Below, piece by piece: positions 7,750-63,967 of a stretch of DNA of 64,000 bases. How positions within the stretch are numbered: position 1 is the first letter of the stretch; each line of letters starts with the position of its first letter. Below the pieces are notes generated by a model. It had not been told where the DNA came from. It saw only the letters and a list, made by a program, of their open reading frames with translations, and made no database searches. The stretch covers positions 124,001-188,000 of the forward strand of contig OX337239.1 of the NCBI GenBank assembly GCA_946965045.2. The letters are read 5' to 3'. The stretch is from Epithemia pelagica (taxonomy: Eukaryota > Protista > Bacillariophyta). The position numbers and the translations under genes are program-made.

Positions 7750-8460
7750 AGCAGTACGTTGTACGTTCCTGCTCGTTTCCCGAACCGTTCTCCGCCTTCT
7801 CCGATAATAGGGATTGATACAGTCGACGCCGATGTCGTATTTTGTGCGCCTTGACCGATGGAACCGCATCAATCAAGACGTGTTCCAATCCCATACTGTT
7901 GTCGCGTTCCATACGGTTTTGGTGACTCTGTACGGTTGGCAATCCTCCATTGTCGTGCGTCAAACGTCTTCACAGCACACACGTAATACGCCAGAGCCCA
8001 TGGAGGACCTTGAAGGACGGTAATTTGAATCGGTTCGGTTGAACACCCTTCATTGTTGTCGCCATAGTGTCTACACAGCACACACGGTACGCCAGATCCC
8101 ATGGATTTTGAAGGACGGTACTAGTCGTTCTCCGTATGGACGCGTGTGACAACGAGGAGAGGCTCTGGACCAACGGTTGTGCTCCTGGCATTGGGCAGCG
8201 GCGCGTTGATACGATCGACTTTCATATGATAGGCCAATGCGACAGGGTCTACTTTCCTTTGCGGACATTCCTGGCGACGGACTGTACCAACAGGTCCTGT
8301 ACATTTTCTCGTGTGTCAGGATGGGGATCCATCGAGCATTTCATTCCGAGCCATGTTCCATTGACCCGTCTTGGTCGGTGGATGGACCCAGGAATCCCAC
8401 CAAAACATGCCACTGGCGTATTTGGAACTTATTTTGAGACAGCTGTGGAAGACTACCCTT
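7750..8460 (-). pseudogene. Inverted, frameshifted copy of the C-terminal domain of the 19122-22687 gene
   Basis: MERDNSMGLEHVLIDAVPSVKA..RRRLYQ..GNEQER and STVLQNPW.LAYRVCC are near-identical to 21971-22687, but split across several frames. Confidence 0.85.
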
Positions 8461-9139
8461 GGTCTCTTCTGTTTTCCTGGAGTCAGCGGAAGAATCGTGG
8501 ACCTATTACCTACCTACCTAACTAGGTACTTACCTTCTCCTCCCTACCTAGCGACTGAGCTATACTTACTCCTACCCCGTACCGACTTCCCATAGAGACG
8601 ATTCACAACGTTCCACTTCCACAGGATGCGTGCGTAAACACGACCAGGACCAACTAAAAATTTTTTATCGGGGTTACGACCAGTTTTCGGTGATAGTAAC
8701 CGATGATCAACGGTTGAATGCGCCGACCGACACTCTCGTACTTAGGGACGCAGACTTTTGCTCGGCTTTGGTTTGTCTTGGTATTTGGAGACTGGAGATT
8801 TTTGGGAGGTGCGGCCACATTTTTCCAGTGTTTGTCCACCGAACCCAAGTACGAATACTACTCCCAATTCTATGGGAAACCTCCAAACGCTCCCTGCCGT
8901 CTCTTATCACACAACGGCTTGCCAGAAGAACAAGCGCGAGGGATTGATGAGGAGGTGATGCAACGGATCCTTGTCTGTCCAATCGGCAGACAAAATTGAA
9001 GAGCGTCCCCAAAAGCACACCAAGAAAACCACAAGAGGACCATTCCCATTATAAAAAAACTCTCAACGGTGGCCTCCACCTCAACCCACACACACACAAT
9101 TTGGATTGACTCTCGTCACTACTCCACTGTATCACCAAC

Positions 9140-19121: not shown

Positions 19122-22100
19122 TTGTGTGCACGGACTGGTGTCAAGAGTATGATTGTATTGCCCGATGCCAGTAGGATGGCGGGTTGTCGACTCTCCAAGA
19201 ACAGCCGCAAAACTCTCCTACTAGAGGACGACGACAAGGACAACGACGAGGACGAAGACTTGACGACCAGTTCCATCACCTTGGGTGATTCCTCCTTGAC
19301 TTGGGATGGTCGACGACCACGACGACAGGGTTCCTTTGAAAGTTTCAGCCACCCCAGTTCCAGTGCGGGGGGATCCTCACACTCGTTGCAAGAGCATCAA
19401 GACGATGGAGGAGACGAAGAAAAAGAATGGGCTCTGATTTCCCCCATTCCCAAAGCTTGCAACAACAATAACAAACAGAACAACCAGACCACGGGTGGTG
19501 GTGGTCCCTTTCGTCGTCGCATTCAGCGTCGCTTCTCAGGTGGCTTTGGTCGAGGAGGACGACAACGACGTGCCGAATCCCTGGACCGTCATGCCACCTC
19601 GGCGGCGGCGGCTAGTTCTGGTGGGAATCCCACCCAACACCAGGCCACAACAACCGTCATGCTGCACCAAGACAAGAACCAGCATCATAAGGTCACTACT
19701 ACTGGACCCGTTTGTCGTCGTCGACTGGACCACACAGCTGCTGCACCAGCCGTTGCGACCACGACTCCTCCCGCCCAACCAAGTCGTCCTCCTGGCAAAC
19801 TGGTCAAACGACATTCCTTTTCCGGATTTATCGACCTCATTGTACCTCCCAAGAAATCAATGGCATCCAGAGACGAGAATCATGCACGGGAGAGCAACTT
19901 TTCTCGTGGCAGAACAACAGCAACAACCACATCCATCCAAAATACAACATCAGGCCCAGCATCCAGAAAAGGAGGACGACGGGTTGTAACACGAAGGGCA
20001 TCGTTCACAAGTCCCACCAGTTCCCATCCAATGGAACCAACCAGCAAGAAGAATGGATCGAGTGTCGTTCCAAGAAGGACACGAACTCAAACTCCAGAAA
20101 GTATCCAGTCGCAGGAAACCAAAGCTCCAATACCATCCCAGCGACAGAGAGGGCGGCCGGCACGGAGGGCATCCTTTACCAGCGGCATGACGACGACAAC
20201 GATAACCACCACCACCACCATTGCAACGAAACAACAACCGCGACGACAACCCCTTCAAACAACAAAAGCGACCACTGCTCGAGGGACCCACCACCATGAT
20301 ACGAAAACTCCACTGCGACGGGGGAGCGGAGTAGTCATCCGGAGGAGGGCATCCTTTGGTGGAATGACCACGAGCAGCAACAAACAGCAACAATATCGAG
20401 ACCAAGAACCCAACACAAAATTGCCGACGCACAACCAACAACTTTTGTCACGGTCCAAGAAACATTTGAATACGGACAATCGTGTAGTAGAAACGTCGCA
20501 TTCGAAACTCAAAAAGCCTTGCCGCATGCTGCTTTCCACGACGCCATTCGCAGTTCCCAAAGTGGATAGTCCTCCCGTAGTGCCTTGTCGTCGTCCAATC
20601 GACCCTGTAGCAGAAGCAACGGACGCATACTGGGAGGAGCAACATCGACTCTATCAACAACTCTATCCCGAACAAGTGGAGCAACAAAAGGACACAACTT
20701 ACAGTCCAGCACGCACAGGAACCATGGCTCCCGGGGCATGGAAAGCTCAACAGAATCCACTGCCCATGAGCCAGTATCCGGAACCAGCACCGAAACAAGA
20801 ATCTTCTCGACCAGAGGATGGATTTTCCAACCGTGGCACACTCACGACACCACCATCTCGTCCACGCATGGCACGACGACGATCGGCTGGTACCATGGCT
20901 CCTGCAGCCTCCATTCCAATGCACCTTCTGCCCAGTATGGTGAACCATCAGCCGACAATGCCAAATGTGTGGTCGTGTCCCAAAAGTATGGACAATGCCC
21001 CCAAGATGCCCTTTCGAAATGGGCATGCCAAGAGCCACACGCTCCAAGCGGAACCATTGGCGGATCCCAATCTTTCAAAGGCTTCTTCTTCTCCTCCTCC
21101 TCGCAATAACACGGTATCGACAGGACTGGTCCATGGTACGAAATCCTTGCAAACCCCATACGTTGGAGTTGTAGAGCAGGATGCCGCGTCGTCCACGATT
21201 CTTTTGCTGACTCCTGAAACCACCAGCCACATTCGCGAGAGTATGAGCGACCCCAAACATTCGAACCCCTATCCTCGTCGTCTTCGTAGTGTCCAACGAC
21301 GGTTCTCCATGGACGCGGCCGCCATCACCACAACCCATACAACGACTCCTCGTTTGGTTCCCGTCGGGATGAATTCTTCGTTGGCAACCGAATCCGAGGT
21401 TCCATTGACCGAGTCCGCACAACCAGGATCAAACGTTACGTTGCCGCCACTGGATTCGAGCCAACGACAACGACGAGGATCGACGGGAACCTCTTCCCAT
21501 GACACACAAACAGAATCTCTCTTTGATTTCCGCGTTCTTGTAAAGGATGACGATGGTCTTGCCCATATCCAAAACAAGGAGTTTGGAAAAAAGAACATCA
21601 AGAATAATGAATCCACTAGTACAGCGAACAAAGAGACCATCCAACGTGATGCCGATACAAAGGCGGTTGTCAAGCCAACAAAAGAGTCGGATGACGACGA
21701 TACCACTGTGACATGGGCCATTCGACAAACTCACCCATGGGTGCAACGCCGAGCATCTCTGGGATCTGGAAGGGCGATACAAGAAGCAACAAACATGGCA
21801 GCCGGAACCAAAACGCCAGAAACCACAAAAAGCCATGAAGCATCAGCCAGCTACTATTCACCACGCCCACACCATTTGGTCCGACGAGAGGGTCCACGGG
21901 TCGTTTCTCGGACACCTCTGCAGCCTCACACAAGGCAGAATTCGGCACTGTTGGCACAGCGGACTCGTCCTTGTCACCAATGCTAGTCCTTCACAGTTGC
22001 CTCAAGACAAGTTCCAAATCTGCCAGTGGCATGTTGGTGGGTTCTTCGGTCCATCATCCACCGACCAAGACAGTTCACTGGAACATGGCTCGGAATGAAA

Positions 22101-22687
22101 AACATGCTCGTCTGATTCCCATTTTGACACTGGAGGAATATAGGACCTGTAGGTACAGTCGTCCGGAATGTCTGCAAATGAAAGCCGACCGTGCCGCCTT
22201 GGCCTATCACATTACTCGATCGTATCAACGCGCGGCTTCCAAACACCCGCAACAAAAAAACCGAGTGTCCAACAAGAGCCCTTCTTCTTCCTTGTCACAC
22301 GCGTCGATACGGAGTTCTCCCAGTACGGTCCTTCAAAATCCATGGGCCCTGGCGTACCGTGTGTGCTGTGAAGACATGAACGACGACACTGGAGGACTGT
22401 CCACCGCACAGATTCAAGTTTTGACCAACTGTATGGAACGCGACAACAGTATGGGATTGGAACACGTCTTGATTGATGCGGTCCCATCCGTCAAGGCCCA
22501 GAAAATGCGATATCGACGTCGACTGTATCAAGTCGTCGTATTGGAGGGCGACGACGAGGGTCCGGGAAACGAGCAGGAACGTGCCAATCGTTGGCGCAAT
22601 GCCTGTATCCCCCTGACACAACCAGCGCAGAGATTTGCCTTGGCTGTGGCCCAGGCGCAAGTCCAACCTTTGGACTCAATCATGTAA
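19122..22687 (+). CDS. Large Ser/Thr/Arg-rich protein plus conserved C-terminal domain; apparent frameshift near 21930-21970
   Basis: 954-aa low-complexity ORF with RRASF motifs overlaps a 238-aa ORF (SCLKTSS..KTVHW..RYSRPEC..MGLEHVL). Architecture matches 14598-16355. Start codon uncertain. Confidence 0.65.
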
Positions 22688-26077: not shown

Positions 26078-26535
26078 GGAGACAAGATTTGAGCTCACGG
26101 AGAGATGTCCATTGGATCTGAATCGCGAGTTGTTGTTTTGGAGGTACACGAGTTAGATCTCCACATTTCCTTTGTCATCCACCTCCAAAACAACAACTCC
26201 CCTTCTGTGTTGAAGGAAAGCAAGTTTGTATTTAGAATGGGGAGCGACACAACAAGGGGTCATCCCAACGTTGCCCTTTTTCGGCCTAAATACGGGCATC
26301 TTACATGGCCTCAGCCGCGGCTGAGGTAGCAGTGACTGCACCTACGACGAGCCGTAGCATGTCGCAAGAAGGCACTGCCAAATCATTTTCGAAGATGAAG
26401 AATGCCATTGCGGCAATCAAGAAGGACGCTCGTCCATGCTACACGAACGCTCATAGATGGTACATACAAGGCGATTACGCAGCTTCTATTTCCCCGTTGA
26501 GTGCGAGCTAGGCTTTAGGACAGCATTTTAAAAGT

Positions 26536-26680
26536 TGTTAGCAGTTCTCCACTTCAAACGAGCAGCCGCACTGCTTATGATTGGGGCTTTTAAATTGTCG
26601 GCCTGTGATTGCCGAGATGCTTTAAACGCCCCCAATCATAAGCAGTGCGGCTGCTCGTTTGGAGTAGAGAACTGCTAACA
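26536..26680. mobile_element. 145-bp MITE/foldback element, ~50-bp TIRs, TGT...ACA ends, 6-bp TSD AAAAGT
   Basis: 26536-26585 matches the reverse complement of 26631-26680 with 2 mismatches. Inner stem TCGGC/GCCGA. AAAAGT at 26530-26535 and 26681-26686. Confidence 0.85.
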
Positions 26681-27046
26681 AAAAGTGCATGGATTCCATC
26701 ATGAATGGCAAGTTGGATAGGCCAAGAAGCGCAACCGACCATATTCCCAAAAAGTGTCCCAAGAAGAAGGCGCTGGTTCGAGAAGATTCGTTTTGACTCA
26801 CCGAGTTGGATTCCCCACAAGAGTCTTCTACTTCTCCTTCGTTACAGGACTCGAATCCTATGCTGACCGTTTGCATGGTGTCGAACCAACAACACTCCAC
26901 CCAAGAATCCAATTATCTATATTGTGGAATGATTCGGCCTTGGATTTGGATCATGCGAAGCATCTCATTGACGAAGAAACGGAACTATTGCCCAACCAGA
27001 CGAGTGGATCCAATCATGACAAGATGATCATGACAAGATGACCGGT

Positions 27047-37989: not shown

Positions 37990-38378
37990 CAACGACCACA
38001 ACAAGAATCAGATTGACAATACGGGCAATGTGTGTGTTTGGGATGCCGAAAAACCCTTGACGTGGGCCTTGAATGAGGAACTACAAGAGCAATTGGTCTT
38101 GCGGAAAACAAGAAAGAGCACTGTTCCTACCGATCCAGACAAGCACCAAACTAGGGAATTCTTGCCCCTCTTGTCGCCGTCACAAACACCAGAACCCGAT
38201 GCAACGACGACGACACCCATGGTCTTGGGAACCGTCTTGAAATTGGGTGCGGGCATGGCTGGATTGGCTGCCTTGTCCTTGGGGCCGTATGCGCACCGCA
38301 TTGTCTTGAGAGATGGCCATTTGTACTGTGTCCAAAGCAATCGAGTCTCGATGCACTTGATACGAGCCTGGCAGGCAC
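37990..38378 (+). pseudogene. Calmodulin-lysine N-methyltransferase-like (Methyltransf_16) fragment, copy 1
   Basis: IDNTGNVCVWDAE..VLKLGAGMAGLAAL..IVLRDGH. Truncated. Confidence 0.7.
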
Positions 38379-40209: not shown

Positions 40210-40878
40210 TGCGCCCTTGACGACGCCCGAAGAGGCACAAGCCTTTTTGGCCAACATGCGGGAAGCGCAACACAAGCGCGAACGCTCCCATCAACCCCCC
40301 AGTAACTTGTCGGCCGATGTCTGGTTTTTGCGACAACGCAAGGAAGAACAGGAATTGCGCAATCGACGACGCGAGGCGGAAACCATTTTGCACAATTATC
40401 GCAGTGGCAATCAAAATGGCAACAACGGCAATGGCAACAGCCGTGCCAGTTGGGACAACAAATCGTCCTCCACACCTCGTCATTCCTCTGCCGGATCCGA
40501 ACATGGCAATGATACACCCACCGATCCCAACGATGACACGGAAAGCCACATTGCAGCCGACTATGCCCGTACAACGGCGGCTCTGTTTGCGACGCAACCC
40601 TTAACCACCAAGGGCCCCAGTCGTAGTAGTAGTTTGCCCGATCAAGAAGAAAAGAAGGAAAGCACGGAACCCTCCTCACCATCACAGCGTCGATTGGGGG
40701 AACCACACAACCGTCCTTGTCGGCCGTTCACCTGTCGGTCGAACCCACGCCGCCCTTGACAACTCCAGCGACAGCAGCAGTTGTGGAAGAAACCATTTGG
40801 AGGGACTTTGTCAGTTCCGCACCAGGTGCCAAGTTTCCACCTTCGGCGGGTCGGTATCACTTGTACTGTGTCGGCGCA
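40210..40878 (+). pseudogene. N-terminal part of a glutathionyl-hydroquinone reductase/GST (ECM4/YqjG-like) gene, truncated by the repeat array
   Basis: WRDFVSSAPGAKFPPSAGRYHLY at ~40800-40866. Homology stops just before the expected CPW active-site motif. Confidence 0.65.
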
Positions 40879-40939
40879 AGTCCTGTTGTGTGTAACATTT
40901 TTTATGTGGCTCTTGGTAAGGAGATTGGTATCTCTCCCG

Positions 40940-41385
40940 CAAGCCCGCTGGCGTCGTCAACGCGGCCACAAATACAGCGGGTATTGTAGGGAAGCGGAGG
41001 AATCAATGGATTCTCCAGGGGCAACTATGGCACTCTTCCCCAATGGCACAGAGACCAAAGTCTCCATGCCATACCTGATGACACAAGGACAAAGTCCTCG
41101 TACCACCAGGGTTTTGTGATGGCATATGGTGACACAAGGACAAAGTCCTCGTGCCACCAAGGTTTTGTGAAATTTTGGAAGCCCAGAGGAATCAATGGAT
41201 TCTCCAGGGGCAACTATGGCACTCTTCCGGAATGGCACAGAGACCGAAGTCTCCATGCCATACCTGGTGACACAAGGACAAAGTCCTCGTGCCACCAGGG
41301 TTTTGTGATGGCACAGAGACCGAAGTCTCCATGCCATACCTGATGACACAAGGACAGAGTCCTCGTGCCACCAGGGTTTTGTGAT
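40940..41385. repeat. Modular tandem array of hairpin-forming units, copy 1
   Basis: Unit A (GAGGAATCAATGGATTCTCC..GCAACTATGGCAC) x2, unit B (GGCACAGAGACCRAAGTCTCCATGCC) x3, unit C (GACACAAGGACARAGTCCTCGTRCCACCARGGTTTTGTGA) x4. Confidence 0.9.
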
Positions 41386-41591
41386 AACACCGACAACCGA
41401 CACACCAACAAGGACCGTCTCCGATCTCCGACAAGGTCTCTAGCTAGACTCAGCTGATGTAGGAGTAGGAAGTAGGAGTAGAATTTAACAATGTCGTTAG
41501 AAACAGAAGAAGGGGTAGAGTGAGTAGGATGAGTAGGAAAACGATTCATTACCGACACGACCGTGCGAACGTACCATTGGCAACCGACAAG

Positions 41592-41860
41592 TTATTTTTC
41601 TGTACCCGTACCCGCGGACAAAAGACGAGCGGATCGTCGAACGTGCACCATTCGGCGTGCCTTTTTGGAGTAGGCAAAAACAAGGATCCTGCCCAAACGC
41701 GGGGAGTCCTCGGGGCCGGAGGAACTCTCGATCACGCTTTGGGGGGCATTCTCATCGATGTGAGGCGAGGTATCGTTTTGGGTGGGGGTGGGGGAAGGAG
41801 GGGTAGCGACCATGGAAGAAGGGGTGGAATTTCGAGGGGGTGAGTCGTGCCCCAAAGTGA

Positions 41861-41892
<32 letters not shown>

Positions 41893-42380
41893 GGGATTAG
41901 CGCGGGTTCAGGCTCAGGACGGTCGACTGGAACCAGAGGGGTCTCCTCGTCGTCCTCGAGATCGTCTGCGAGTGCGAGAGGAGGGAAGTCCAAGTCAGCG
42001 TCGAACTCGCAAGGCAGAACAGCAACAGTGTCGACGTCGACCGCCTCCTCGCGATCGCGAATCTCCATCTCTTCATCTTCCTGTCGACCATTCTTGCAGT
42101 TCTTCGCAGCAAGCTTTGCTTCGGCAATGGCCAGCTGTTGTTGAAGCTGAGCTTTGTCGTGTCGAAGCTGTCGAAGCTCCGCGTGTTCGCTACTTGTAGT
42201 ACGACTTTTCTTGCTGAAAATGACCCGAAACAGGTGTTGGACGATAAGTTTCGCCTCATCGAGGACATCAGCGACACCGTAACACAGTATGAGAGTCACA
42301 AAAGGAGCAACTAACAGAGCCCATTCGGAGCTGATCATCTTTTCGTAACAGTAATCACAATCACACATCATCATGGTCAA
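41592..42380 (-). CDS. Unknown protein: N-terminal TM, coiled coil, acidic/Pro-rich region, basic RRSARL tail (copy 1)
   Basis: 262-aa frame, also open in the second copy, where its indels are multiples of 3. Confidence 0.6.
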
Positions 42381-42899
42381 TCGTATTTTTGGTCAATCGT
42401 ATTTTGTTTTTGTGCGTTTTGGATTGTTGCGTGTTGTTGTTGTTGGCGTTTCGTGTTGTTTGGCGATCGGACCCTCGAGGTGCGAGGCAGCGGGGTCGGT
42501 TTAGACGAGCACAACAATCAACCGTTCGAGGGCAGCAACACCCACCGTCGGGGCAATGTCGCACGTACCTCGAGGGGTCGAGGGCAGCAACACAGCGCAA
42601 CTACTCAACAATCAACCGTCGGGCGGTCCAATCACCACCAAGACGACGACGACGACAAGAACAAAGAGCAAGTCGATGACGACGACACAACAACAAGATT
42701 CTAAATCATAATGAATAGCACACCATCGTGCATGGGTTGGTTCTTCTTCTATGCGACTACTACGACGGTTTGGTTGATACAACAATACAATACAATACTA
42801 CACCCCAATCTGTTTCGTTTTGATGTTTGCTGGTTTCTACCTAGTTTGGTTAATGGGCCACCAAGGGAGCCGTTGCAGCTGTGGTGGGCACTTCGGACC

Positions 42900-43325
42900 G
42901 CATCTCCTCGACACATTCTTGAAAGTCTCCCATATCAAACAACATAGCGCCCTTGAAATGACTGGCATCGCCAAATTGGACATGATCCTTGTCAATCATT
43001 TGATTGGTTCGGGCGACGCGGCCAAAATTGTTCAATGGATTTGTAGAGGGCGGCCAGTGTGGCATTGCCGCGCTTGAGGGTTTCTTGGAGCATGGAAAGG
43101 GCTTCTTCGGGTTTGCGCAACAACATTCGGGCCATGTTGTTGACCGAACACAAATCCACAGGGTCAAAATTGAGAGGCAAAAACTTGTGCGACACGGACG
43201 CGGCCAAGTGAAAGAATTGCAGGGCTGTATTGGGTCGACACCAATCTGATAATGAATCAGGCCCATATTAAGGAGGGTCGCCTTGGAACATTCGACGGGT
43301 CCGGCACAACAGGCGGCTTCTTCTT
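42900..43325 (-). pseudogene. TPR-like protein fragment (copy 1)
   Basis: KATLLNMGLIHYQ..SVNNMARMLLRKPEEALSMLQETL, frameshifted. Confidence 0.5.
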
Positions 43326-43334
43326 GCGTGCCCG

Positions 43335-43510
43335 TCATGTCCGGCATGCAACAAAAAGTAGGATTGCAAAGTCCGCAATCGGGCCAATTCGCCTTCAACC
43401 GTTTGGTCCTGGGCTTCAGGATCGGGGACGGGCAAAATCCAATCGTTGGTGGCAATGCCTTGCGGCGTAATCGTTCGCAAGGCCTCGCGTAATTCGGAAT
43501 CGTCCACAAA
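43335..43510 (-). pseudogene. Fragment resembling the pre-GAF helix of sensor proteins (copy 1)
   Basis: QTVEGELARLRTLQSYFLL resembles the ExxRLxxLxxYxIL GAF N-terminal helix. Cut immediately after. Confidence 0.5.
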
Positions 43511-43814
43511 TCCACCACGGAACGACCGGCCGTAGACACGGGCGTACGAGCCTTTTTGCGAGCCGGATACGAATAGCAAGACATGGTAGTAGTGTGTTGT
43601 GTTTGTTGCGTTTGGTTAACAAAGGTCGTTGTTGCAAGTTGCAATTCGCAAGACTTGTGAGCTCAACTACACAACGTCTCTACTTCTACGAGTAGGGTTG
43701 TGTTCGTCTCCCTCCACACCTGATCTGTGGGACAAGCACACGGCCCCAACTACAACGCAACTCTCTCTAAGTCGTCGTCGTCATCGTCGTGTTGGAGGAG
43801 GATGGTGGTGTATG

Positions 43815-44012
43815 GTCACCGGGCAATTGTCCACAGTCGGATATCACGACATTGACAACAGGTTTGTCCGAATAGCCCGTTTTGGTCGTTTCAATCACCT
43901 GAACAATTTCCATGCCTTCGACGACATGCCCCAAAACGACATGATGTTTGTCATCCAAATGCGGCGTGGCGGTGGTGGTGACAAAATTCGTGCCTGGACC
44001 GGAATTGGCCAT
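43815..44012 (-). pseudogene. Cyclophilin C-terminal fragment (copy 1)
   Basis: [56 protein letters not shown]. The conserved GSQF is deleted. Confidence 0.9.
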
Positions 44013-46229
44013 CGGCTATGAGTAGACCAAATAATGCTTTCAATCTTAGTACAAGAGTGAAAGAAGACGTTCCCAGTGGTGGTTGTGGTAGTTGCAAGGG
44101 TTCCTGGGGGCGTGGTTTGGTGCAGCCACAGAAGGATGATGATCTTCGTCTTGTTGCAGTGGGACGAAGAGAGAGCTCCGCAAGAGGCAATGGTAGAATC
44201 AACCTCCACCAGGTACTCCGTGGGAATGACGGAGTCTGCGCAAGAGAGAGAACATGAGAATACGAGACCAGTGGCATTGGTAAATTGTTACAAACAGGAA
44301 CTTACCTTGTTGCTTCAGGTAGGCGAGAAGAGAAGCTAGCTTGTCGCCTTTAGCTTAGCACTGGTTGCCACATATAACGATCTTATATTTCCATGTACTC
44401 TTTAGAGTGTGATTGTTTGTCGTTATCTTACGACGGACTGTCTGCAAATGGTCGGCTTGGAATACAAAACATGTCATTCAACGCTGCATTATCCAACTGG
44501 TAGTACTTGTGGCAGTGGCGCACTCACTGCATTCGATACGGTTGTGGAGGCTCGAGGTGAATCGTTGTCAGGCGACGACGAAACCAAATGTTCATCGTCA
44601 CTGGTTTGATGAGGATTGGTGTCTGAAGAGAGGCCCTGGAAGTTTCGCATTTCATTTCCTCTCTGGAAAGAAATCGGTATTCTTGTTGGTCGAGAATTTA
44701 TAGTACAGTGGCACAAGACTCCTTCCATTGTGTGTTTTTTTTTCTGGCCATGACTTGTCTTGGCGAGTACAGTGTCGGGCTCATCCAGCAGGCGAAATCT
44801 CTTTCATGATTCTGTGCGTTTTCCTGGGATAGCGAGGTCTCTATCGTTCTCTTCTCTGGCGAGGTCCATGGTCCATGGTTGCGTCGGCGATGGTCATGAC
44901 CATGGAAAGGAGGGAAATCTGAGGATGATGAGGATCGAGAAAACCATCTTTGAAGCCCATTCAGGAGGATCTCGATCCACCTGTGATCATCGGGAGCATT
45001 CTTGAGTTCATACCGACGATAGGTCGACAAATGCTTCAAGACGCAGACATGTGCGTAGCTATTGTGTTCTGCAACCCCACTCGTTCCGCAAGCGGTGCGC
45101 CATTCGGAAGCACATGAAACCAACGGATGTTTTATGTTTTCGTACTCGTACACGACAAAGACCAAATAGTAATGGAGTGACAGATGTACTTAGACGTAAG
45201 ACGTACGCCGAGCTTCCGAATTGTTACCTATCAAATAGCAAGTAAACGGATTCTCAACGCAGAGCTTCCGAATTGTTCTCTATCAAATAAACGTCAACGG
45301 ATCCTGAACGCTAATTATCAATCAATACAATTGGCCAACGGATCTCGAACGCCAGGCGACACTTCTCGGGGGAAAAGGGGGCATACATACAGACACAACA
45401 GTTCGTTCAAGAGGATACAGGATACGCTCTTTCCCGTCGCCATCCCCTTGGACGCATGCGTGAAAGGCGATTCCCTCTTTGTGTGGTCTCCCTTTCAGAG
45501 AGACAAACAATCAGTAATCATCCACATAGCAACTCGTTGAGCGTTAAACCGTCGTCGGTTCGTAGTTCTATTACTCCTATAGCATCTAATATATTATATA
45601 GAGACTTGTTCCATTCGTCTCACAAACTAGACAGCACAACCACAAACACTCATCATGCTTCGGTTCGTCGTTCTACGAAAAGCATAGCATACTATAATGC
45701 AAAGTGACTTGTTCCTTTTGTCTCGCATCAAGTCAGTATAGACAGACAAACCACCGACACAGAGAGGACTGAAGAAATTTGTGTAGGAGTAAGAAAAACC
45801 TATTCGACTGGCTACTAATTATTTTGGCATGCCGGTGTAATTGGCAGGGTAAGGCCATGGATTCTGTTGTTGTTGTTGTTGTTGTTACTGCGAGAACGTG
45901 GTGTCATTGCAGCAGAGAGAAAGGCAGTCCTCTCTCATGCTTGCATTGTGCCATCTTTATGGTCTGTTGATGAAGATGGCAACCCCATTGAGGATGGTGG
46001 AGCCGTTCCCAACACAAGGACGGCCGCCTCGGATCCACCCCTTCCCGTCAAGCTGTGTTTGGCCAGTTCGCTCCATACCGTGGCTGGGACCCGAAATTGC
46101 CGTGGCGGATATCTTGCCCGTGTTTACGGATTATTTTTGTTGGCATCGTCGATCATGAAAAACTACAGTCATGCATTTAAAGCAGTTGCCTCCATGACAG
46201 CGAGGTGAATATTCGTCTTATCAGCGGCA

Positions 46230-47480: not shown

Positions 47481-48332
47481 CGCACTGGGAGATGAACTCG
47501 GATTGGCACATTGCAAGTCCATGCTGTAGGTGAGCGAAAAACCTGGTGTCAAATGTACTTCGAAAAGTAAGGATATGATATCCCTCAGGGGCGTTCTCTT
47601 CCTTGGTAAGACTTTTGCATGTAAACCAATTGAGTATGTCTTCGGATCGGGAAGATTCGTAATATCCCAAATTTCATGGTTTTTACGGATAGAGTACCTG
47701 AAACCAATCGCTTCGTGTTCGTCAACATGCTTTATCATCCGACGATAACGCGCGGTCACAAGCTCCATATGAGCTGGAATATGCTGACTCTTGGCCACCA
47801 TAGTAGGATTTTTCTTTAAACGGCAACATGATAATTCTTCCACATGCCATGGTATGTGTTGACCCATTTATCTACGTCAGCGTCAGGTTGGAGATGAAGA
47901 TGAATGAGCCGTAATGGAAGACTGAGAGGGATAAGCCACCCTTTGTTTCCATTCGGTGCAGACGACACCATGGATTCGTTGTCGTCGTTCGTCCCTTGTA
48001 TTCGTTGTTGAAGCTCTGAAGCATCTTGACAGTGCTTGTTCCGATCCAGCTTACAGATGTGATCGAGCAGGAGCCGACCCGGAAGGTGTAAGTTCTTGTT
48101 CTTGATGCTTTCAAGATGCGATTTGTAGCAGGTCAAGAATGTGAACGGCGAAACATGGCCTATTGAACTGGCCTGGCCAGAACAACGACAAGCGCAACGA
48201 CCTTGCCATGAGACATCGTGTTCTTGCCACTCTCATACACGAGGTGGAGGTGGATCGTGGATATCATATCGATGCGCACCATTGCGCGCACGCCGCACGG
48301 ACTGCATCCAATAAGACAGTAAGTGGATTTCC

Positions 48333-48490
48333 TTGTCGAGGCTCTCGCGTACATTTAGCTTTTTCCGGTCACGTTCCTCTATGTGGGGATCAAGGAATGA
48401 GGCTGTACTACGTCAAGAGAAGCAAGAACGCAACGAGCAAATTCACGGATCTCATCCGCAGATTCCTTCGACAAATTTCGCTCCAGAAAC
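48333..48490 (+). repeat. ~160-bp dispersed repeat, copy 1 (of 56612-56770)
   Basis: GTCGAGGCTCTCGCGTACATTTAGCTTTTTCCGGTCACGTTCCTCTATG..AGCAAGAACGCAACGAGCAAATTCACGGATCT is shared. Confidence 0.9.
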
Positions 48491-48729
48491 CAGCACAACA
48501 GATGCTAACGTTGAGGGCAAGACTACTCCAAATGATGAACCACAGGAGGACATTGATAACGTTCGCAGTGACGAAGAGTCTCTTGCGACGTGGTCGGTGG
48601 CCACACTCACGAAGAAATGATCAGGACTGGAGACCGGTCCACAACTGGACGAGAATGAAACGACGGACAAACAACAGAGCGGAACAACATCTTCTGAAGT
48701 CTCACATAGACACAAAGAAAAGAAAGATT

Positions 48730-55590: not shown

Positions 55591-56611
55591 AATGCTACCG
55601 ACGCAAAAAGATGAGAGAGATGAGTTCGGTGCGCATTGCCCGCACGGACTGCATCCAATTTGATCTTGGTTCCTCTAAGGTTAACGGTCTAACGGACGAT
55701 CTGAGAAGAGGGGCTTAGACAGATGTGCGCCGTCTACCTAATTTCGATCTAAGTCTTGGTCCCAAAACGGATAGGATCCGCCGGTCGAGCCTTCAGGAAA
55801 GCTACTTGTCCCCAGTCCCCACATCCAACGCTCTTTGAGGGGTTCATTGTTTTGTTGTTGTGTGCACCTTTCCATTTCCGATCAAACATATAATAGATCC
55901 ATCGACACCTTTCGAATGGAGTGGCCGCATGCTTGAGATGACCGTCGTCCTTCAAGCAAGTGCATCATGGTGAATTCAGCAGTTTGTTTCGACAAGGGGG
56001 GAAAATCTTCATCTGTTACATCATGACAACGTCGCCGTGATCACTACGTACAGGCATGGGATATGGAACAAGAGGATGTCTTCTCTTGTACCAGCATAGT
56101 AAGCCCTGACACCGACAGTCTATCACGCGATCAAGCTTTTGATTCGTGTAGTACTGAAGTAAATTCGACCACGAAGAATGTCCCTTTACCGGAAACCACG
56201 CGATCAGGAGAAGGTACTCTTAAAGAGACTTTCCCTCATGATGAGACAAGGGACAGCAAACTGGGAGATATGGATTTGCTCCCATGTCGGTCACCTGATG
56301 ATGATGCAGAACAAAACCTTCGTGATCAGCCTCTACACACAGATGATGAAGAGAGAACACCAATGGAAGATGCGATTCGGGAGATGGAACAAGAGAGGAC
56401 GAAAGATGTGCCTGATAAAAAGACATGGCTTGAAGAACAGGTCTCTACTAGCCATGAGAAACTTGGGATGACATGTTACTGTATTCGAAAAGAAGACCGA
56501 CGACGAGAAAGAAAGGTAGCGACTCCTTGTACGGTACCGAAGCAAAGCATCCATGGCATCTCATGTGGGAGCCGGAACAGGGAAACCGGGGTCGCATGGC
56601 ACGGGGGGTTC

Positions 56612-56770
56612 CATGTCGAGGCTCTCGCGTACATTTAGCTTTTTCCGGTCACGTTCCTCTATGGGGGGGATCAAAGAAGGTGGGTGTACCACGTCAAGAG
56701 CAGCAAGAACGCAACGAGCAAATTCACGGATCTGATCTGATGATTCTTTCGACAAATTCCGCTCCAGAAA
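56612..56770 (+). repeat. ~160-bp dispersed repeat, copy 2 (of 48333-48490)
   Basis: Direct sequence match to 48333-48490. Confidence 0.9.
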
Positions 56771-58789
56771 CCCGCACAACAGACAGGCGGCACCACCCCA
56801 TTCCTGTCGTCGTCATTCTTGGACGATGAAGCTGGTTCGCACGGAGAGGCACCGGAGGGTGACTATGAGTTTTGTCTGGCGTTGTCGCATCATGTGCACC
56901 ATCGGCTGTCGGTCTATCATGCCTTTATGGAATTTGTGTTGGGGATTGCCTTTTCCGAGCGACAACAACATGTTCACGATGAGGAGAACCGCGGTGAGGA
57001 ACTGTTCACTGTTGCTCTGAGCACCAAGGCTGACGACACCAGGGGAAACGTTGGCCAACCACAACAATCGTGCTGTGTTTTGGGCATGTTGCGGGTGGGG
57101 AAAGAGACCACACAAGCCTTGCAACACTTGATTGCGCTCTATGTAGGGATTCCCATGGGAGACGATTTGCAAACACTGTGTCGGGCATCGGATCATTTGG
57201 CCGCCTACGGCTTTAAGAACCAAAGATCTTGCCACCGCCATCGATGTCCTGTGGCGAAGAAGATCAAAACTCGTCAGGAGGAGAATGAACGCTCTGCTGC
57301 CGCAGTTGTGATCCAGCGCGCATTTCATCAGAGTCGTGCTATCTTCGAAGATCCCGCAATTTGTGACAGAGTGTCTGGCTCGTTGTTTACGCGCTGGACA
57401 GTACTTCTTCTCATGATTTCGTGGTCGATCGCAGCAACGATACTTTTGGTCAAGCCACAGGGCAAAATTGCGGACATGGGCTGGAATGCATCATCATCAC
57501 GAACATACTGTGTTTGGTCACGGCAAGCATCGTCATGCTGCACTTGGTCATTTTGAACGTCGATACCTTGAAGATTGAAGACCACGAACATTGGAAACCA
57601 TCCTCAAGTCCTTCCACTGAGCCAACCGTGCCAATGTCAGCCCACCCCAGTGGACAGCGAAATGGCAAGCGTTCATCCCCGAGCAAACGTACGTCCATTG
57701 AAGGAACATCAAGCAAGATGAATCGCAGCACACGACCGCATACGTCGCCAGCTGCATCAACAAAGACCTCCAAGGCACTAATCTCATCATATCCCAGCAG
57801 TTCCTCCGTCAGAGACTCTACCTCATCACTGTACGTGTCTCCGTCCTCTACGCTCCTTGGCTGTAGAAGAGTTATAAAGTGTGTTCACATACACAAGTCC
57901 TAGATTGACTGCAAAGCACTCTTCTCATGGCCATGACCGTCCCGAACGAACGAAGATCTCTTGTGCGTATCAAACGTGGCGGTTTCTTCTTTCTCTCCAT
58001 AGCTGTGTTTGCCCACCCTTTGGAATCGAACGGAAGGCAATGCGAATAACGGCTCTTCATGGCATTGTTGAAATGGGAGGATTGCGGTTGGGACATGGAT
58101 ACGAATGTCAAAGCAACAATAGTGTCGAATAGGACAAGAACAACACCAACCACCACCACAACCACACGAAAGGATCAAGACACACGGGAGCAGGTCACCA
58201 CACGGTCGTCCACCAATAAACAAGGCAACACCGTATATATAGACCGGTACACCACTCGTTCCGTGACTCTCCTGGTTTTCTTCTTCTTTGGTGTCAATCC
58301 CTCCTTGGATCGACTTGTGTGTGAGGCTCATGGGCAGCCAATCTCTCTCGAATTTGCCTTTGTTTGTTTTGCGTTTGGATGGGAACTCAGGAGCGATGAT
58401 TCCGAGAGACATTTTCTCTCTCCATCACACCTTCCCAAAGAATCCTCCTACTGGAATGGATGAGAATGCGCGAAAGTTCCTGGAACAAACGAGAGGAGGA
58501 CCCCAAAAATAGAATCGAGACAGGGAACGCCATTTCTCTACCTAGAAATCGACAAGGGCCGCGTGCAATCGATTCGGTTTCTCGTTCGTGGCACACGTGT
58601 GTGAATCGCTAGAGTGCTCTCCAGTCGGTTGGTGGTACTGGCGCATTGGTTTCTTTGTCTTTTCTGCCTTGGAGGTTTCTGCCAAGTCTTGCTAAAAACT
58701 TCCGATATCATCATGACACCCTTCTTGCTCGATTACACTCGGCATGTTGTTGTTCGGTTGCTTCTCATCGTCGTCTCAAGGCTAGCTAT

Positions 58790-59090: not shown

Positions 59091-59332
59091 ATTGGAAACT
59101 GGCCGCGCAAACACCCAATGTCCTATCCGAGAAGCCGACGGACGACCAGGACCTATCACCAGTAACACCACCTCATACGGGAGGCATGAGTCATTCTCAT
59201 TCTCTGTCGTCGTCGCCTCAGGCGGCTATTCATGGCGCCTTTGCTGGAGTGTTGGATGGCTAATACTTTGTGTCGACAAGGACCGATCGACCCAACCACT
59301 CATAGTCTCTGTTGCGTACAGCTCTTGGTGGA

Positions 59333-59940
59333 AAGCCCGCTCGCGACGTCAACGCGGCTGTACAATGAACGGGTGAGGCGACAGGACGTCAATGGACGCC
59401 TGTCAGGCACTATGGCACACCCCAGAGGCTTATCAGAGGAAACCCCAAACTCGTAACTCGTCCCCACCATCTGGACACGAGTGCCCAGGGTGAGTAGGCT
59501 AATCAAGAGGTAGCCCTAATCTCTTGGAGTACATACAATTTGAACGGAGGACGAGGCGACCGTATTGTATGTACTCTTGAGGCTAATCAGAGGAGCCCCC
59601 AAACTCCCCACCATCTGGACACGAGTGCCCAGGGTGAGTAGGCTAATCAAGAGGTAGCCTTAATCTCTAGGAGAACATACAATTTGAACGGTGGAGGCGA
59701 CAGGACGTCAATGGACGCCTGTCATGCAACTATATGGCACACCTCACGCCGTATTGTATGTAACTCCTGAGGCAATCAGAGGAGCCTCTAAACTCCCCAC
59801 CATCTGAACACGAGTGCCCAGAGGGTGAGTAGGCTAATCAAGAGGTAGCCCTAATCTCTATCTGGCACAGAGACCAAAGTCTCCATGCCAGATACCTGGT
59901 GACACAAGGACAAGTCCTCATGCCACCAGGGTTTTGTGAT
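59333..59940. repeat. Modular tandem array of hairpin-forming units, copy 2
   Basis: 63-bp unit x3 (59462, 59606, 59795), GACAGGACGTCAATGGACGCCTGTC x2 (59380, 59699), 13-bp stem GAGTACATACAAT/ATTGTATGTACTC, then one B+C unit at 59864-59940. Confidence 0.9.
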
Positions 59941-60105
59941 AACACCGACCGAACGGACACACCAACAAGGACCACCAACAAGGACGTCTCCGACAAGGAC
60001 GTCTCCGACAAGGACTCTAGCTAGACTCAGCTGATGTAGGAGTAGGAGTAAAATTTAGCAATCGGTAAGGGGTATTGAGTGAGTAGGTTGAGTAGGAAAG
60101 ATTCA

Positions 60106-61059
60106 TTACCGACACGACTGTTCGCACGTACCACCAGCAACCGACAACCGACATGTTTTTTTCTGGTTTTTTTGGATTTTTTTGCTTTTTCTGGGTTTTT
60201 TGGATTTTTTTGCTTTTTCTGGGTTTTTTGGATTTTTTGGATTGTTTTCAACAGCACCACTACCCGTACCCGCGGACAAAAGACGAGCGGATCGTCGAAC
60301 GTGCACTATTCGGCGTGCCTTTTTGGAGTAGTAGGCAACAACAAGGATCCTGCCCAAACGCGGGGAGTCCTCGGGGCCGGAGGAACTCTCGATCACGCTT
60401 TGGGGGGCATTCTCAACGATGTGAGGCGAGGTATCGTTTTGGGTGGAGGTGGGGGAAGGAGGGGTGGCGACCATGGAAGAAGGGGTGGAATTTCGAGGGG
60501 GTGAGTCGTGCCCCAAAGTGATCTCGTCGTCGTCGTCGTCGTCGTCGTCGGGGATGAGCGCGGGTTCAGGCTCAGGACGGTCGACTGGAACCAGAGGGGT
60601 CTCCTCGTCGTCCTCGAGATCGTCTGCGAGTGCGAGAGGAGGGAAGTCCAAGTCAGCGTCGAACTCGCAAGGCAGAACAGCAACAGTGTCGACGTCGACC
60701 GCCTCCTCGCGATCGCGAATCTCCATCTCTCCATCTTCCTGCCGACCATTCTTGCAGTTCTTCGCAGCAAGCTTTGCTTCGGCAATGGCCAGCTGTTGCT
60801 GAAGCTGAGCTTTGTCGTGTCGAAGCTGTCGAAGCTCCGCATGTTCGTGTCGAAGCTCCGCGTGCTCGCTACTTGTAGTACGACTTCTCTTGCTGAAAAT
60901 GACCCGAAACAGGTGTTGGACGATAAGTTTCGCCTCATCGAGGACATCAGCGACACCGTAACACAGTATGAGAGTCACAAAAGGAGCAACTAACAGAGCC
61001 CATTCGGAGCTGATCATCTTTTCGTAACAGTAATCACAATCACACATCATCATGGTCAA
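60106..61059 (-). CDS. Unknown TM/coiled-coil/acidic protein (copy 2) with an added Lys-rich tail
   Basis: 317-aa frame, near-identical to 41592-42380 plus NPKNPEKAKKSKK tail. Confidence 0.6.
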   Translation of the reverse strand: MTMMMCDCDYCYEKMISSEWALLVAPFVTLILCYGVADVLDEAKLIVQHLFRVIFSKRSRTTSSEHAELRHEHAELRQLRHDKAQLQQQLAIAEAKLAAKNCKNGRQEDGEMEIRDREEAVDVDTVAVLPCEFDADLDFPPLALADDLEDDEETPLVPVDRPEPEPALIPDDDDDDDDEITLGHDSPPRNSTPSSMVATPPSPTSTQNDTSPHIVENAPQSVIESSSGPEDSPRLGRILVVAYYSKKARRIVHVRRSARLLSAGTGSGAVENNPKNPKNPEKAKKSKKPRKSKKIQKNQKKTCRLSVAGGTCEQSCR

Positions 61060-61579
61060 TCGTATTTTTGGTCAATCGTATTTTGTTTTTGTGCGTGTTG
61101 GATTGTTGCGTGTTGTTGTTGTTGGCGTTTCGTGTTGTTTGGCGATCGGACCCTCGAGGTGCGAGGCAGCGGGGTCGGTTTAGACGAGCACAACAATCAA
61201 CCGTTCGAGGGCAGCAACACCCACCGTCGGGGCAATGTTGCACGTACCTCGAGGGTCGAGGGCAGCAACACAGCGCAACTACTCAACAATCAACCGTCGG
61301 GCGATCCAATCACAACCAAGACGACGACGACGACAAGAACAAAGAGCAAGTCGATGACGACGACACAACAACAAGATTCTAAATCATAATGAATAGCACA
61401 CCTTCGTGCATGGGTTGGTTCTTCTTCTATGCGACTACTACGACGGTTTGGTTGATACAACAATACAATACAAAACTACACCCTAATCTGTTTCGTTTTG
61501 TTGTTTGCTGGTTTCTACCTTAGTTTGGTTAATGGGCCACCAAGGGAGCCGTTGCAGCTGTGGTGGGCACTTTGGACCG

Positions 61580-62200
61580 CATCTCCTCGACACATTCTTG
61601 ATAGTCTCCCATATCAAACAACATAGCGCCCTTGAATTGACTGGCAGCGCCAAATTGGACATGATCCTTGTCAATCATTTGATTGGTCCGGGCGACGCGG
61701 CCAAAATTGTTCAATGGACTTGTAGAGGGCGGCCAGTGTGGCATTGCCGCGCTTGAGGGTTTCTTGGAGCATGGAAAGGGCTTCTTCGGGTTTGCGCAAC
61801 AACATTCGGGCCATGTTGTTGACCGAACACAGATCCACAGGGTCAAAATTGAGAGGCAAAAACTTGTGCGACACGGACGCGGCCAAGTGAAAGAATTGCA
61901 GGGCTGTATTGGGTCGACACCAATCTGATAATGAATCAGGCCCATATTAAGGAGGGTCGCCTTGGAACATTCGACGGGTCCGGCACAACAGGCGGCTTCT
62001 TCTTGCGTGCCCGTCATGTCCGGCATGCAACAAAAAGTAGGATTGCAAAGTCCGCAATCGGGCCAATTCGCCTTCAACCGTTTGGTCTTGGGCTTCAGGA
62101 TCGGGGACAGGCAAAATGGGCAAAATCCAATCGTTGGTGGCAATGCCTTGCGGCGTAACCGTTTGCAAGGCCTCGCGCAATTCGGAATCGTCCACAAAAT
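61580..62200 (-). pseudogene. TPR-like and pre-GAF fragments (copy 2)
   Basis: Same motifs as 42900-43510. Confidence 0.5.
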
Positions 62201-62514
62201 CCACCACGGAACGACCGGCCGTAGACACGGGCGTACGAGCCTTTTTGCGAGCCGGAGACGAATAGCAAGACATGGTAGTAGTGTGTTGTGGTTGTTGCGT
62301 TTGGTTAACAAAGGTCGTTGTTGCAAGTTGCAATTCGCAAGACTTGTGAGCTCAACTACACAACGTCTCTACTTCTACGAGTAGGGTTGTGTTCGTCTCC
62401 CTCCACACCTGATCTGTGGGACAAGCACACGGCCCCAACAACAACGCAACTCTCTCTAAGTCGTCGTCGTCGTCGTCATCGTCGTGTTGGAGGAGGATGG
62501 TGGTGTATGGTCGG

Positions 62515-62745
62515 CGGGGAATTGTCCACAGTCGGAAATCACGACATTGACAACAGGTTTGTCCGAATCGCCCGTTTTGGTCGTTTCAATCACCTGAACA
62601 CTTTCCATGCCTTCGACGACATTCCCAAAAACGACATGATGTTTGTCATCCAAATGCGGCGTGGCGGTGGTGGTGACAAAATTCGTGCCTGGACCGGAAT
62701 TGGCCATCGGCTTATGAGTCATTTGGAAATTTTCATCCGACGCCA
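62515..62745 (-). pseudogene. Cyclophilin C-terminal fragment (copy 2)
   Basis: [41 protein letters not shown], with internal deletions. Confidence 0.9.
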
Positions 62746-63339
62746 CATGCACATGAAACCAACGGATCTTTTCGAATAGTGTACTCGTTCACAAGAAAGA
62801 CCAAATAATGCTTTCAATCTTCGTACAAGAGTGAAAGGAGAAGTTCTCCGTGGTGGTCGTGGTAGTTGCAAGGATTCCTGGGGGCGTGGTTTGGTGCAGC
62901 CGCACGAGCAGCAGCCACCGTCGTGGATGGTAAGAGCGGTGGCAACAAGGGATGTTCGTGACCAATCATGAAGGGAGGAGGATCTTGGTCGTCGTGATCG
63001 CCTTGGAAGCCGTCGTCGTAGTCACTCATCTTGGTTTCTTCTACTCCTTCTGAGCCGTTGTTGAGACAACTTGAAGGATGTTTGATGGAGTCCTGACGGT
63101 GGAACTGGAGGAGGCGACCCAAACCGCAAATTTTCCCCTTTTAGTATACAAAACAGGGCCCCTCTTCAACCAAAGATTCTTGCTCGAAACGGTTATGGTT
63201 CGCTGGTCTCGAGCTTGTGGAGATTGGCACCAGACGACTGGGTAGATGCTGCAGCATCCTCGGTTGTTGTCGACGAGTCTCCCAGAGTCTCGGTTCGGCC
63301 AGGAGGATGAAACTGTATCATGATCCATGGCCATCGTCG

Positions 63340-63967
63340 TCGTTGCCTGCCAGGCTCGTGTCAAGTGCACCGAGACTCGATTGCTTTGGACACGGTACAA
63401 ATGGCCATCTGTCCAGACAATGCGGTGCGCATACGGCCCCAAGGACAAGGCAGCCAATCCAGCCATGCCCGCACCCAATTTCAAGACGGTTCCCAAGACC
63501 ATGGGTGTCGTCGTCGTTGCATCGGGTTCTGGTGTTTGTGACGGCGACAAGAGGGGCAAGAATTCCCTAGTTTGGTGCTTGTCTGGATCGGTAGGAACAG
63601 TGCTCTTACTTGTTTTCCGCAAGACCAATTGCTCTTGTAGTTCCTCATTCAAGGCCCACGTCAAGGGTTTCTCGGCATCCCAAACAACCACATTGCCCGT
63701 GTTATCAATCTGATTCTTGTTGTGATTGGGAGCCAATTCGTGGAGGGAAAAGTGGTGCCGCGACATGCCCCGCACCAACACGTACCGACAGCACTCATTC
63801 GTGGTGTCCTGTGGTGGTTGCGGCGGCATGTTGTTGTTGTTGTTGTTGTTGTTGTTATTGTTTGGGATACTGCAGGAAATGGGATAGCACTGGCTTTGAT
63901 AACGATCACGTTGATGGAACGGACGATTAGGAACAGGGCTGGTCAGTTCAATAAAAAGGTGAGCCAC
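63340..63967 (-). pseudogene. Calmodulin-lysine N-methyltransferase-like fragment, copy 2 (inverted, longer)
   Basis: FSLHELAP..IDNTGNVVVWDAE..VLKLGAGMAGLAAL..IVWTDGH. Matches 37990-38378. Confidence 0.7.

Follow-up and report, generated by a model that had tools for sequence, protein, structure and literature searches.

What is the run of hairpins near one end of this 64,000-nucleotide stretch of diatom DNA (the window): a structured RNA, a single-stranded DNA element, or a repeat without function? A sequence-only reading of the window had described it as a modular array with conserved loops and covarying stems, and had offered protein-binding or packaging hairpins, a replication or nicking origin, or a ribozyme-like RNA tied to a mobile element. 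We find that a duplicated gene on the minus strand has the flagged array as its diverged 3' flank, and that the structure of the array belongs to the minus strand, the sense strand of that gene. The window is eukaryotic, with intron-poor genes and a G+C content of about 50%, and a scan of all 64 kb returned no tRNA and no tmRNA. A ribosomal protein S7e encoded on a sister contig resembles diatom proteins most closely, with Epithemia clementina (86%) as its best named match.

The window holds two such arrays, which form the left ends of the two copies of a segmental duplication (Table 1). Identity between the copies is 96.5% in the coding part and 80% in the leader that follows the stop codon, and the arrays have only modules in common; the duplication stops at the G module. 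Convergent genes flank each array, a plus-strand gene on one side and the duplicated minus-strand gene on the other. The plus-strand neighbours, with stop codons at 40759 and 59263, are mutually unrelated, and the one ending at 59263 encodes an aminotransferase. Since the arrays lie between convergent genes and on the sense strand of the duplicated gene, they constitute the 3' flank of the minus-strand gene. For comparison, we fetched twelve further loci of the gene family (L001-L011 and L044), all from assembly ERZ21939226.

Table 1. Features of the window, in nucleotides from its first letter, and assignment of all loci to the two array types
Feature	Position	Strand	Structure or content	Basis or remark
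Array 1 (type 1)	40941-41380	minus	5' to 3': A B A B E2 A A B E2 G	
Family gene copy 1	41592-42380	minus		
Array 2 (type 2)	59303-59935	minus	5' to 3': A, B, three times (C + D + variable part), terminal G module, short common tail	Module map and folds; homology to other copies stops near 59303
G module	59333-59362	minus	Single copy at the far end of array 2	92% identity with 40941-40966
Terminal E element	59366-59430	minus	P1 stem + conserved unpaired stretch + hairpin E	Covariance model R2, 76.6 bits
Hairpin E	59381-59405	minus	6 bp, bulged pyrimidine, 4 bp, 4-nt loop	
C hairpin + D hairpin	59469-59517	minus	C with 5 bp and 9-nt loop, followed by D	Further copies at 59613-59659 and 59802-59852
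F hairpin	59525-59578	minus	Perfect 13-bp stem	Outer stem as in 59664-59772, without E insert
Composite long hairpin	59664-59772	minus	Outer F stem + P1 stem around conserved single-stranded stretch + hairpin E (59701-59725)	
Hairpin B	59859-59894	minus	16 bp including 2 G.U	Sequence homologue of A
Hairpin A	59895-59930	minus	16 bp including 3 G.U, 4-nt loop	Covariance model R1 match
Leader	59955-60015	minus	Between stop codon and array 2	Tandem-repeat search
Family gene copy 2	60106-61059	minus		No Pfam domain
Segmental duplication	59333-62901 paired with 40941-44127		About 3.5 kb: array + family gene + upstream cyclophilin-like gene	
Type 1 arrays	40941-41380; L003, L004, L005a, L006-L008, L010, L011			
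Type 2 arrays	59303-59935; L001, L002, L005b, L009			

The window carries several other repeats. An intergenic, near-perfect hairpin at 26533-26682, with 52-nt arms that are 96% complementary around a 43-nt spacer, has a folding energy of -109 kcal/mol whichever strand is used (z about -18). ORFs of at least 100 aa are absent from this interval, which may represent a locus for hairpin RNA or an inverted repeat of MITE type. A 381-nt inverted duplication (37997-38377 and 63344-63724, 97% complementary) has its two copies 25 kb apart. A series of inverted-repeat blocks with 79-93% identity (7763-8463 and 21976-22582) suggests an older inverted segmental duplication, and a direct repeat of about 175 nt (48329-48502 and 56609-56783, 89-97% identity) recurs with 8.3 kb between its copies.

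Every motif quoted by the sequence-only reading is present, exactly where it was placed or a few bases away. The GACAGG-type hairpin was found at 59381-59405 and 59701-59725, and the GGAG-type hairpin at 40997-41017 and again near 41188; both types have the common loop and the GCA(A)CTAT..GGCAC flank after it. The perfect 13-bp stem joins 59527-59539 to 59564-59576, while the CTGGACAC..GTGCCCAG hairpin and the GGCTA..TAGCC hairpin occur three times each. Two descriptions needed revision. The "shorter-stem copy" near 41186 is short only when the plus strand is read: the minus strand gives it a G.U closing pair and a longer stem. The "63-bp units" do repeat three times, but they are not standalone units; they form the constant 5' part of units of 144 nt and 191 nt, the start-to-start spacings of the repeat families being 144 and 189.

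The arrays contain up to about 15 tandem hairpins of five types, each homologous within itself (A/B, E/E2, C/H, D and F), and behave like minisatellites. Type 1 arrays follow the plan (A B [E2])n and close with G or another common tail. Type 2 arrays open with A B, continue with units of 144-191 nt and carry G at the end. Each type 2 unit joins a constant 65-nt part (C + D) to a variable part consisting of H and the outer F stem, in which E is present or absent in array 2. The F stem surrounds either a short loop or an E element, and the 13-bp stem singled out earlier is an F stem without insert. Unit number varies among paralogues and also between L007 and L008, which are probably alleles, as are, by their appearance, the window contig and L001, and L004 and L006. 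Both the order and the number of modules vary across loci, and the module maps thereby support the earlier proposal that modules are shuffled between copies. The sequence around the arrays is built in a similar manner. Tandem repeats of 13-15 nt in the leader correspond to the 3' arm of hairpin A, with the partner arm absent, and number 2-6 across paralogues. Upstream of the family gene the sequence is likewise modular, with variable repeats in the window (61060-61400 and 42381-42720) and in L002-L010, and downstream of these a conserved stretch of about 130 nt precedes the ATG.

Both arrays fold more stably than shuffled sequence. The region 59320-59950 reaches -279 kcal/mol on the minus strand (z -7.8) versus -243 kcal/mol on the plus strand (z -7.0), and the region 40920-41400 reaches -239 kcal/mol (z -12.1) versus -194 kcal/mol (z -6.5). 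The hairpins behind the candidate structured RNA have thus held up, with the minus strand as the better-pairing one. The strongest hairpins of the window are A and B, neither of which had been stressed before. Both reach -25.9 kcal/mol on the minus strand (z -6.1 for A), compared with -16.9 kcal/mol for A and -20.1 kcal/mol for B on the plus strand, and type 1 copies give -30.7 versus -22.3 kcal/mol (hairpin A) and -20.1 versus -14.3 kcal/mol. The composite long hairpin (-49 kcal/mol, z -6.6) is alike on both strands; taken by itself, an E element has unremarkable stability (z -0.9 to -2.2) and shows no strand preference. Within the window, the module motifs are confined to arrays 1 and 2, against a shuffle expectation of about 0.

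Wobble pairs carry the same strand preference. Across the aligned A/B and E/E2 hairpins, G.U occurs at nine stem positions on the minus strand and A.C at none, and these G.U positions become A.C mismatches when the plus strand is read. Pairing accordingly drops on the opposite strand from 98% to 81% for A/B and from 95% to 90% for E/E2. In the gene bodies, rare sense-strand transitions, counted with majority-rule polarisation, comprise 155 that would make G.U and 107 that would make A.C. Because this bias is merely 1.45:1, the 9:0 excess is unlikely to result from mutation bias alone (probability roughly 0.01). Wobble by itself would also suit a DNA-level explanation, in which single-stranded hairpins would serve as hot spots of recombination or gene conversion, or as sites for an HUH-type nuclease, and so drive the mosaicism or the spread of the family. 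DNA tolerates G.T, and DNA energy parameters likewise favour the minus strand, with a narrower gap between strands than RNA parameters give.

The stem differences between copies preserve pairing while the loops stay fixed, as had been noticed from the sequence. Hairpins A and B align column for column in MAFFT and are therefore homologous. Among their 13 shared pairs, five are invariant, five differ by wobble only and three have changed on both sides in a compensatory way; 98.1% of cells are paired, and all shuffles and slid registers score far below. E and E2 have the loop and two closing pairs in common and differ on both sides at 7 of 10 pairs, with 95% of cells paired and a score reached by 0 of 500 shuffles. 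Two versions of the inner stem occur within E, one G-C and one A-U, and D variants differ by wobble-compatible transitions only. The P1 stem, which surrounds the conserved unpaired stretch lying 5' of E/E2, is built from four different sequence pairs; its cognate arms average -11.4 kcal/mol versus -6.8 kcal/mol for non-cognate ones. L001, the probable allele of the window, shows four differences from it, two of which fall in the A and D stems and keep the pair. The predicted base pairs are thus backed by covariation among the paralogous and tandem copies of one genome; since no relatives occur beyond one assembly, this covariation is limited to copies that exchange sequence.

Pairing events were also counted, with distinct variants scored against real reference copies. 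There are 18 pair-keeping events (14 transitions and 4 compensatory changes) and 17 pair-losing events (3 transitions and 14 transversions), some of the latter at array breakpoints. Substitution density per nucleotide is 0.17 in stems and 0.13 in unpaired positions, without depletion in stems. The suggestion that selection acts on structure is supported by the compensatory changes but weakened by the pair-breaking transversions, and we consider the evidence that selection may maintain pairing to be moderate and to hold within one genome only.

The main rival, and a serious one, is that the array is a neutral palindromic minisatellite, an unstable and functionless 3' flank that changes by slippage or unequal crossing-over and whose arms are matched by templated quasi-palindrome correction. 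Such a history would account for the undepleted stems with their 14 pair-breaking transversions, for the likewise variable tandem modules of the leader and the 5' flank, and for copy numbers that vary across paralogues and probable alleles. It would also agree with a module identity of 92-100%, which is not above that of the conserved 3' half of the coding sequence. However, arm correction predicts perfect Watson-Crick pairing or strand-symmetric mismatches rather than nine G.U and no A.C. It also sits poorly with subfamily loops that are identical although up to 7 of 10 stem pairs have changed on both sides, and with four P1 sequences that still pair around one conserved unpaired stretch. On balance, we regard neutrality as unlikely, while giving it real weight.

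For the protein encoded beside the arrays, reading of the sequence suggests a hydrophobic segment at the N-terminus, a coiled coil, an acidic region and a conserved basic C-terminus; a Pfam search with it found no domain. A word-based search expanded the family to at least 22 members, namely the window copy and 21 proteins from ENA-sourced contigs with 59-94% identity. A profile HMMER search of 1.84 billion representatives returned four proteins, all of them family members or fragments. By these comparisons, the gene family is an orphan, lineage-specific to the diatom. Protein searches with the family and with the array ORF returned no transcriptome-derived protein from the source diatom. The mosaic family alignment, with variable N-termini and coiled-coil inserts and a nearly constant 3' half, suggests that paralogues have recombined or undergone gene conversion.

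Within its 3' end, at 60158-60248, the minus-strand ORF 60106-61059 contains a T-rich tandem repeat of 28 nt, which provides this copy with a Lys-rich tail. The copy at 41592-42380 has no such tail, and the family splits into members with and without it.

The link between gene and array is consistent. All 15 core copies of the gene that were fetched are followed on the sense strand by an array, at 150-420 nt from the stop codon. One array, at L005 16160-16563, is gene-less and starts mid-module. L044 (10001-11350) contains two divergent, probably truncated tandem members that retain the conserved 5' flank and have neither the conserved C-terminal half nor a hairpin array. In L011 (6400-9770), the family gene and its array lie on either side of a 3.4-kb insertion, which contains a 786-aa ORF without a Pfam hit. 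We built covariance models from the A/B alignment (R1) and from E/E2 (R2) and searched 277 kb on both strands, taking matches above 40 bits (R1) and 55 bits (R2) as strong. This yielded 61 A/B and 32 E/E2 elements, all sense to the gene and all within arrays. Antisense images of the array hairpins scored 14-26 bits versus 44-52 bits for the sense hairpins, and three matches beyond the arrays were at chance level (15 bits or less).

The proposed tie to a mobile element is not upheld, as the arrays are fixed, always in sense orientation, at the 3' flank of one family, and the ends of homology vary by copy. Nor did we find any sign supporting a replication or nicking origin. The same features bear on single-stranded DNA hairpins as recombination or nuclease sites. 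From general knowledge, the bulged base and conserved 5' flank of E resemble the recognition features of IS608 and REP elements, and the mosaic proteins and the termination of the window duplication at the G module would be in keeping with such sites. Against this, there is no dispersal, no model match above 15 bits occurring beyond the family 3' flank in 277 kb; the orientation of array to gene is invariant, and no terminus is common to the copies. Furthermore, the Pfam-annotated genes of L001-L011 and L044 (about 213 kb) include no transposase, HUH or Rep gene beside an array and no Rep/helicase-type transposase, and no RAYT (IS200/IS605-type) transposase was found in the fetched loci. We therefore consider a role as DNA hairpins improbable.

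Several specific mobile-element models were tried and rejected. The ORFs of about 785 aa beside the L002 and L011 arrays do not indicate a transposon, as they are mutually unrelated and one only has an RNase H-like domain (a 784-aa ORF with RVT_3 just past the array, L002 8033-10387). The remaining domains of mobile-element type, in an RVT_2 ORF and a weak MULE match, occur in L044, several kb away from its two members without arrays. A Helitron-type element is not indicated, given that the homology ends differ between copies and the common tail does not end in CTRR. REP/BIME-like dispersal was dismissed since all 61 + 32 strong elements in the 277 kb lie in family 3' flanks or in one gene-less remnant, and retroposition since there is no shared 3' end and no poly(A) remnant.

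Searches beyond the family gave little. Exact-pattern scans of viral contigs for hairpins B and A returned 0 matches, as did a scan of JGI metagenome contigs for the hairpin B pattern. The E-element pattern matched 32 times in JGI contigs, which we estimate to be about the chance number, and R2 scored these at 16 bits or less, compared with 57-77 bits for genuine elements. When the array-1 sense ORF was used as a protein query to find other assemblies, it recovered three ORFs only, two on one ERZ21939226 contig and one that had been fetched from the same assembly. This restriction to one genome in viral, JGI and protein searches is what a neutral minisatellite would also produce. In the literature searched, we found no account of such hairpin arrays in diatoms.

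Comparison of the whole window with Rfam, which might have named the element, gave 0 matches at the gathering score. At E-values up to 10, the two arrays drew weak matches to wcaG (18.7 bits versus a threshold of 42), mir-1329 (27.8 versus 101) and snoRNA models (12-15 versus 35-50). Even at an E-value of 10, no ribozyme model matched either array, and the idea of a ribozyme-like RNA falls with this. A self-cleaving or otherwise catalytic RNA on a mobile element could call on the presence of conserved hairpins and nothing further, but conserved junction cores are absent from the stems, which are simple perfect helices, there is no catalytic-core motif, and the arrays bear no mobile-element signs. 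This reading is effectively refuted, and we assign it a negligible chance.

Three other identities were also examined and set aside. An H/ACA or C/D snoRNA is not indicated, as the stems, inspected by eye, are without pockets or conserved boxes. A hammerhead was suggested by CTGATGA beside hairpin A, which is unconserved (CTGGTGA elsewhere) and is not followed by GAAA. The TGACGT of E and G recalls a bZIP site and is not kept in the CAUC/GAUG variant.

A precursor of small RNAs deserves separate mention. Here, A-A pairing around B would create long interrupted helices, Dicer or another RNase III-type enzyme would cut them, and the small RNAs would silence the family. Minimum-free-energy folds of type 1 arrays do select inter-unit helices of 17 + 17 + 13 bp, and miRNA-precursor models are among the weak Rfam matches on the minus strand, though far under threshold (15-28 bits versus gathering scores of 54-104). 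The single stems, however, measure 13-17 bp, short of the roughly 21-nt duplex of a miRNA precursor and of the usual 21-25-nt Dicer duplexes. Moreover, the longer inter-unit helices are possible in type 1 arrays only, since type 2 arrays have a single A and a single B. We see only a slim prospect for this explanation.

Because the array pairs best on the gene strand and stands behind every core copy, we favour, at about even chances, the view that it is a structured 3' tail of the family mRNAs, most likely in the 3' UTR. The array would then be transcribed together with the family gene and would act as a multivalent platform of helices. Proteins of the RNase III type, or others that bind double-stranded RNA, could recognise the perfect 13-17-bp stems of A and B, and the E element, given its fixed loop, bulged pyrimidine and conserved unpaired stretch on the 5' side, could be a target for sequence-specific binding. 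Such a platform may set the stability, 3'-end processing, translation or localisation of the family mRNAs. Slippage or unequal crossing-over, together with gene conversion among paralogues, could shuffle the modules, and the same processes may produce the mosaic family proteins. A more ambitious proposal is an undescribed eukaryotic system, in which the genes of an orphan, recombining membrane-protein family give rise to transcripts whose 3' tail consists of strand-specific modular arrays with 3-5 hairpin types that co-evolve, and dedicated RNA-binding or RNase III-type factors control the expression of its members or their mRNA ends, a nuclear counterpart of the bacterial BIME. This we put forward tentatively and consider doubtful.

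If transcribed and bound, the arrays would represent a compact natural multivalent hairpin platform that evolves like a minisatellite while its helices are kept, and a marker for an orphan, fast-recombining gene family; R1 and R2 would be ready for seeking the same design in other stramenopile genomes. If neutral, they would provide a clean example of how palindromic tandem repeats can mimic covariation. To our knowledge, post-transcriptional control in diatoms is poorly charted, and we know of no curated families of structured 3'-UTR elements in this group.

Among known systems, the arrays recall the bacterial REP/BIME elements, which are short imperfect palindromes in variable composite arrays just 3' of genes, strand-specific and with G.U(T) pairs. 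REP/BIME arrays act as RNA, protecting the upstream mRNA. They are, however, bacterial, dispersed over hundreds of intergenic regions and linked to RAYT, whereas the diatom arrays are eukaryotic and nuclear, attached to one gene family in one orientation, with no RAYT-type enzyme in the fetched loci. The one-strand hairpins near the end of a repeated unit also resemble the 3' terminal hairpin of Helitrons and the subterminal hairpins of IS200/IS605, but the diatom arrays comprise many hairpins, have no CTRR-type terminus and no Rep/helicase gene in the fetched loci, and are undispersed in the 277 kb. With hairpin-forming minisatellites and quasi-palindromic repeats they share tandem palindromic units and allelic copy-number variation; unlike these, they show strand-biased wobble, compensatory differences between subfamilies and consistent attachment to the 3' side of a gene. 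Finally, eukaryotic 3' UTR stem-loops, such as Roquin CDE/ADE clusters, Staufen-binding stems, Rnt1p/RNase III hairpins and the histone 3' stem-loop, are likewise sense hairpins past the stop codon, possibly in multiple copies, with conserved loops and variable stems. The diatom hairpins match none of these in consensus loop or stem length, and the corresponding Rfam models are silent.
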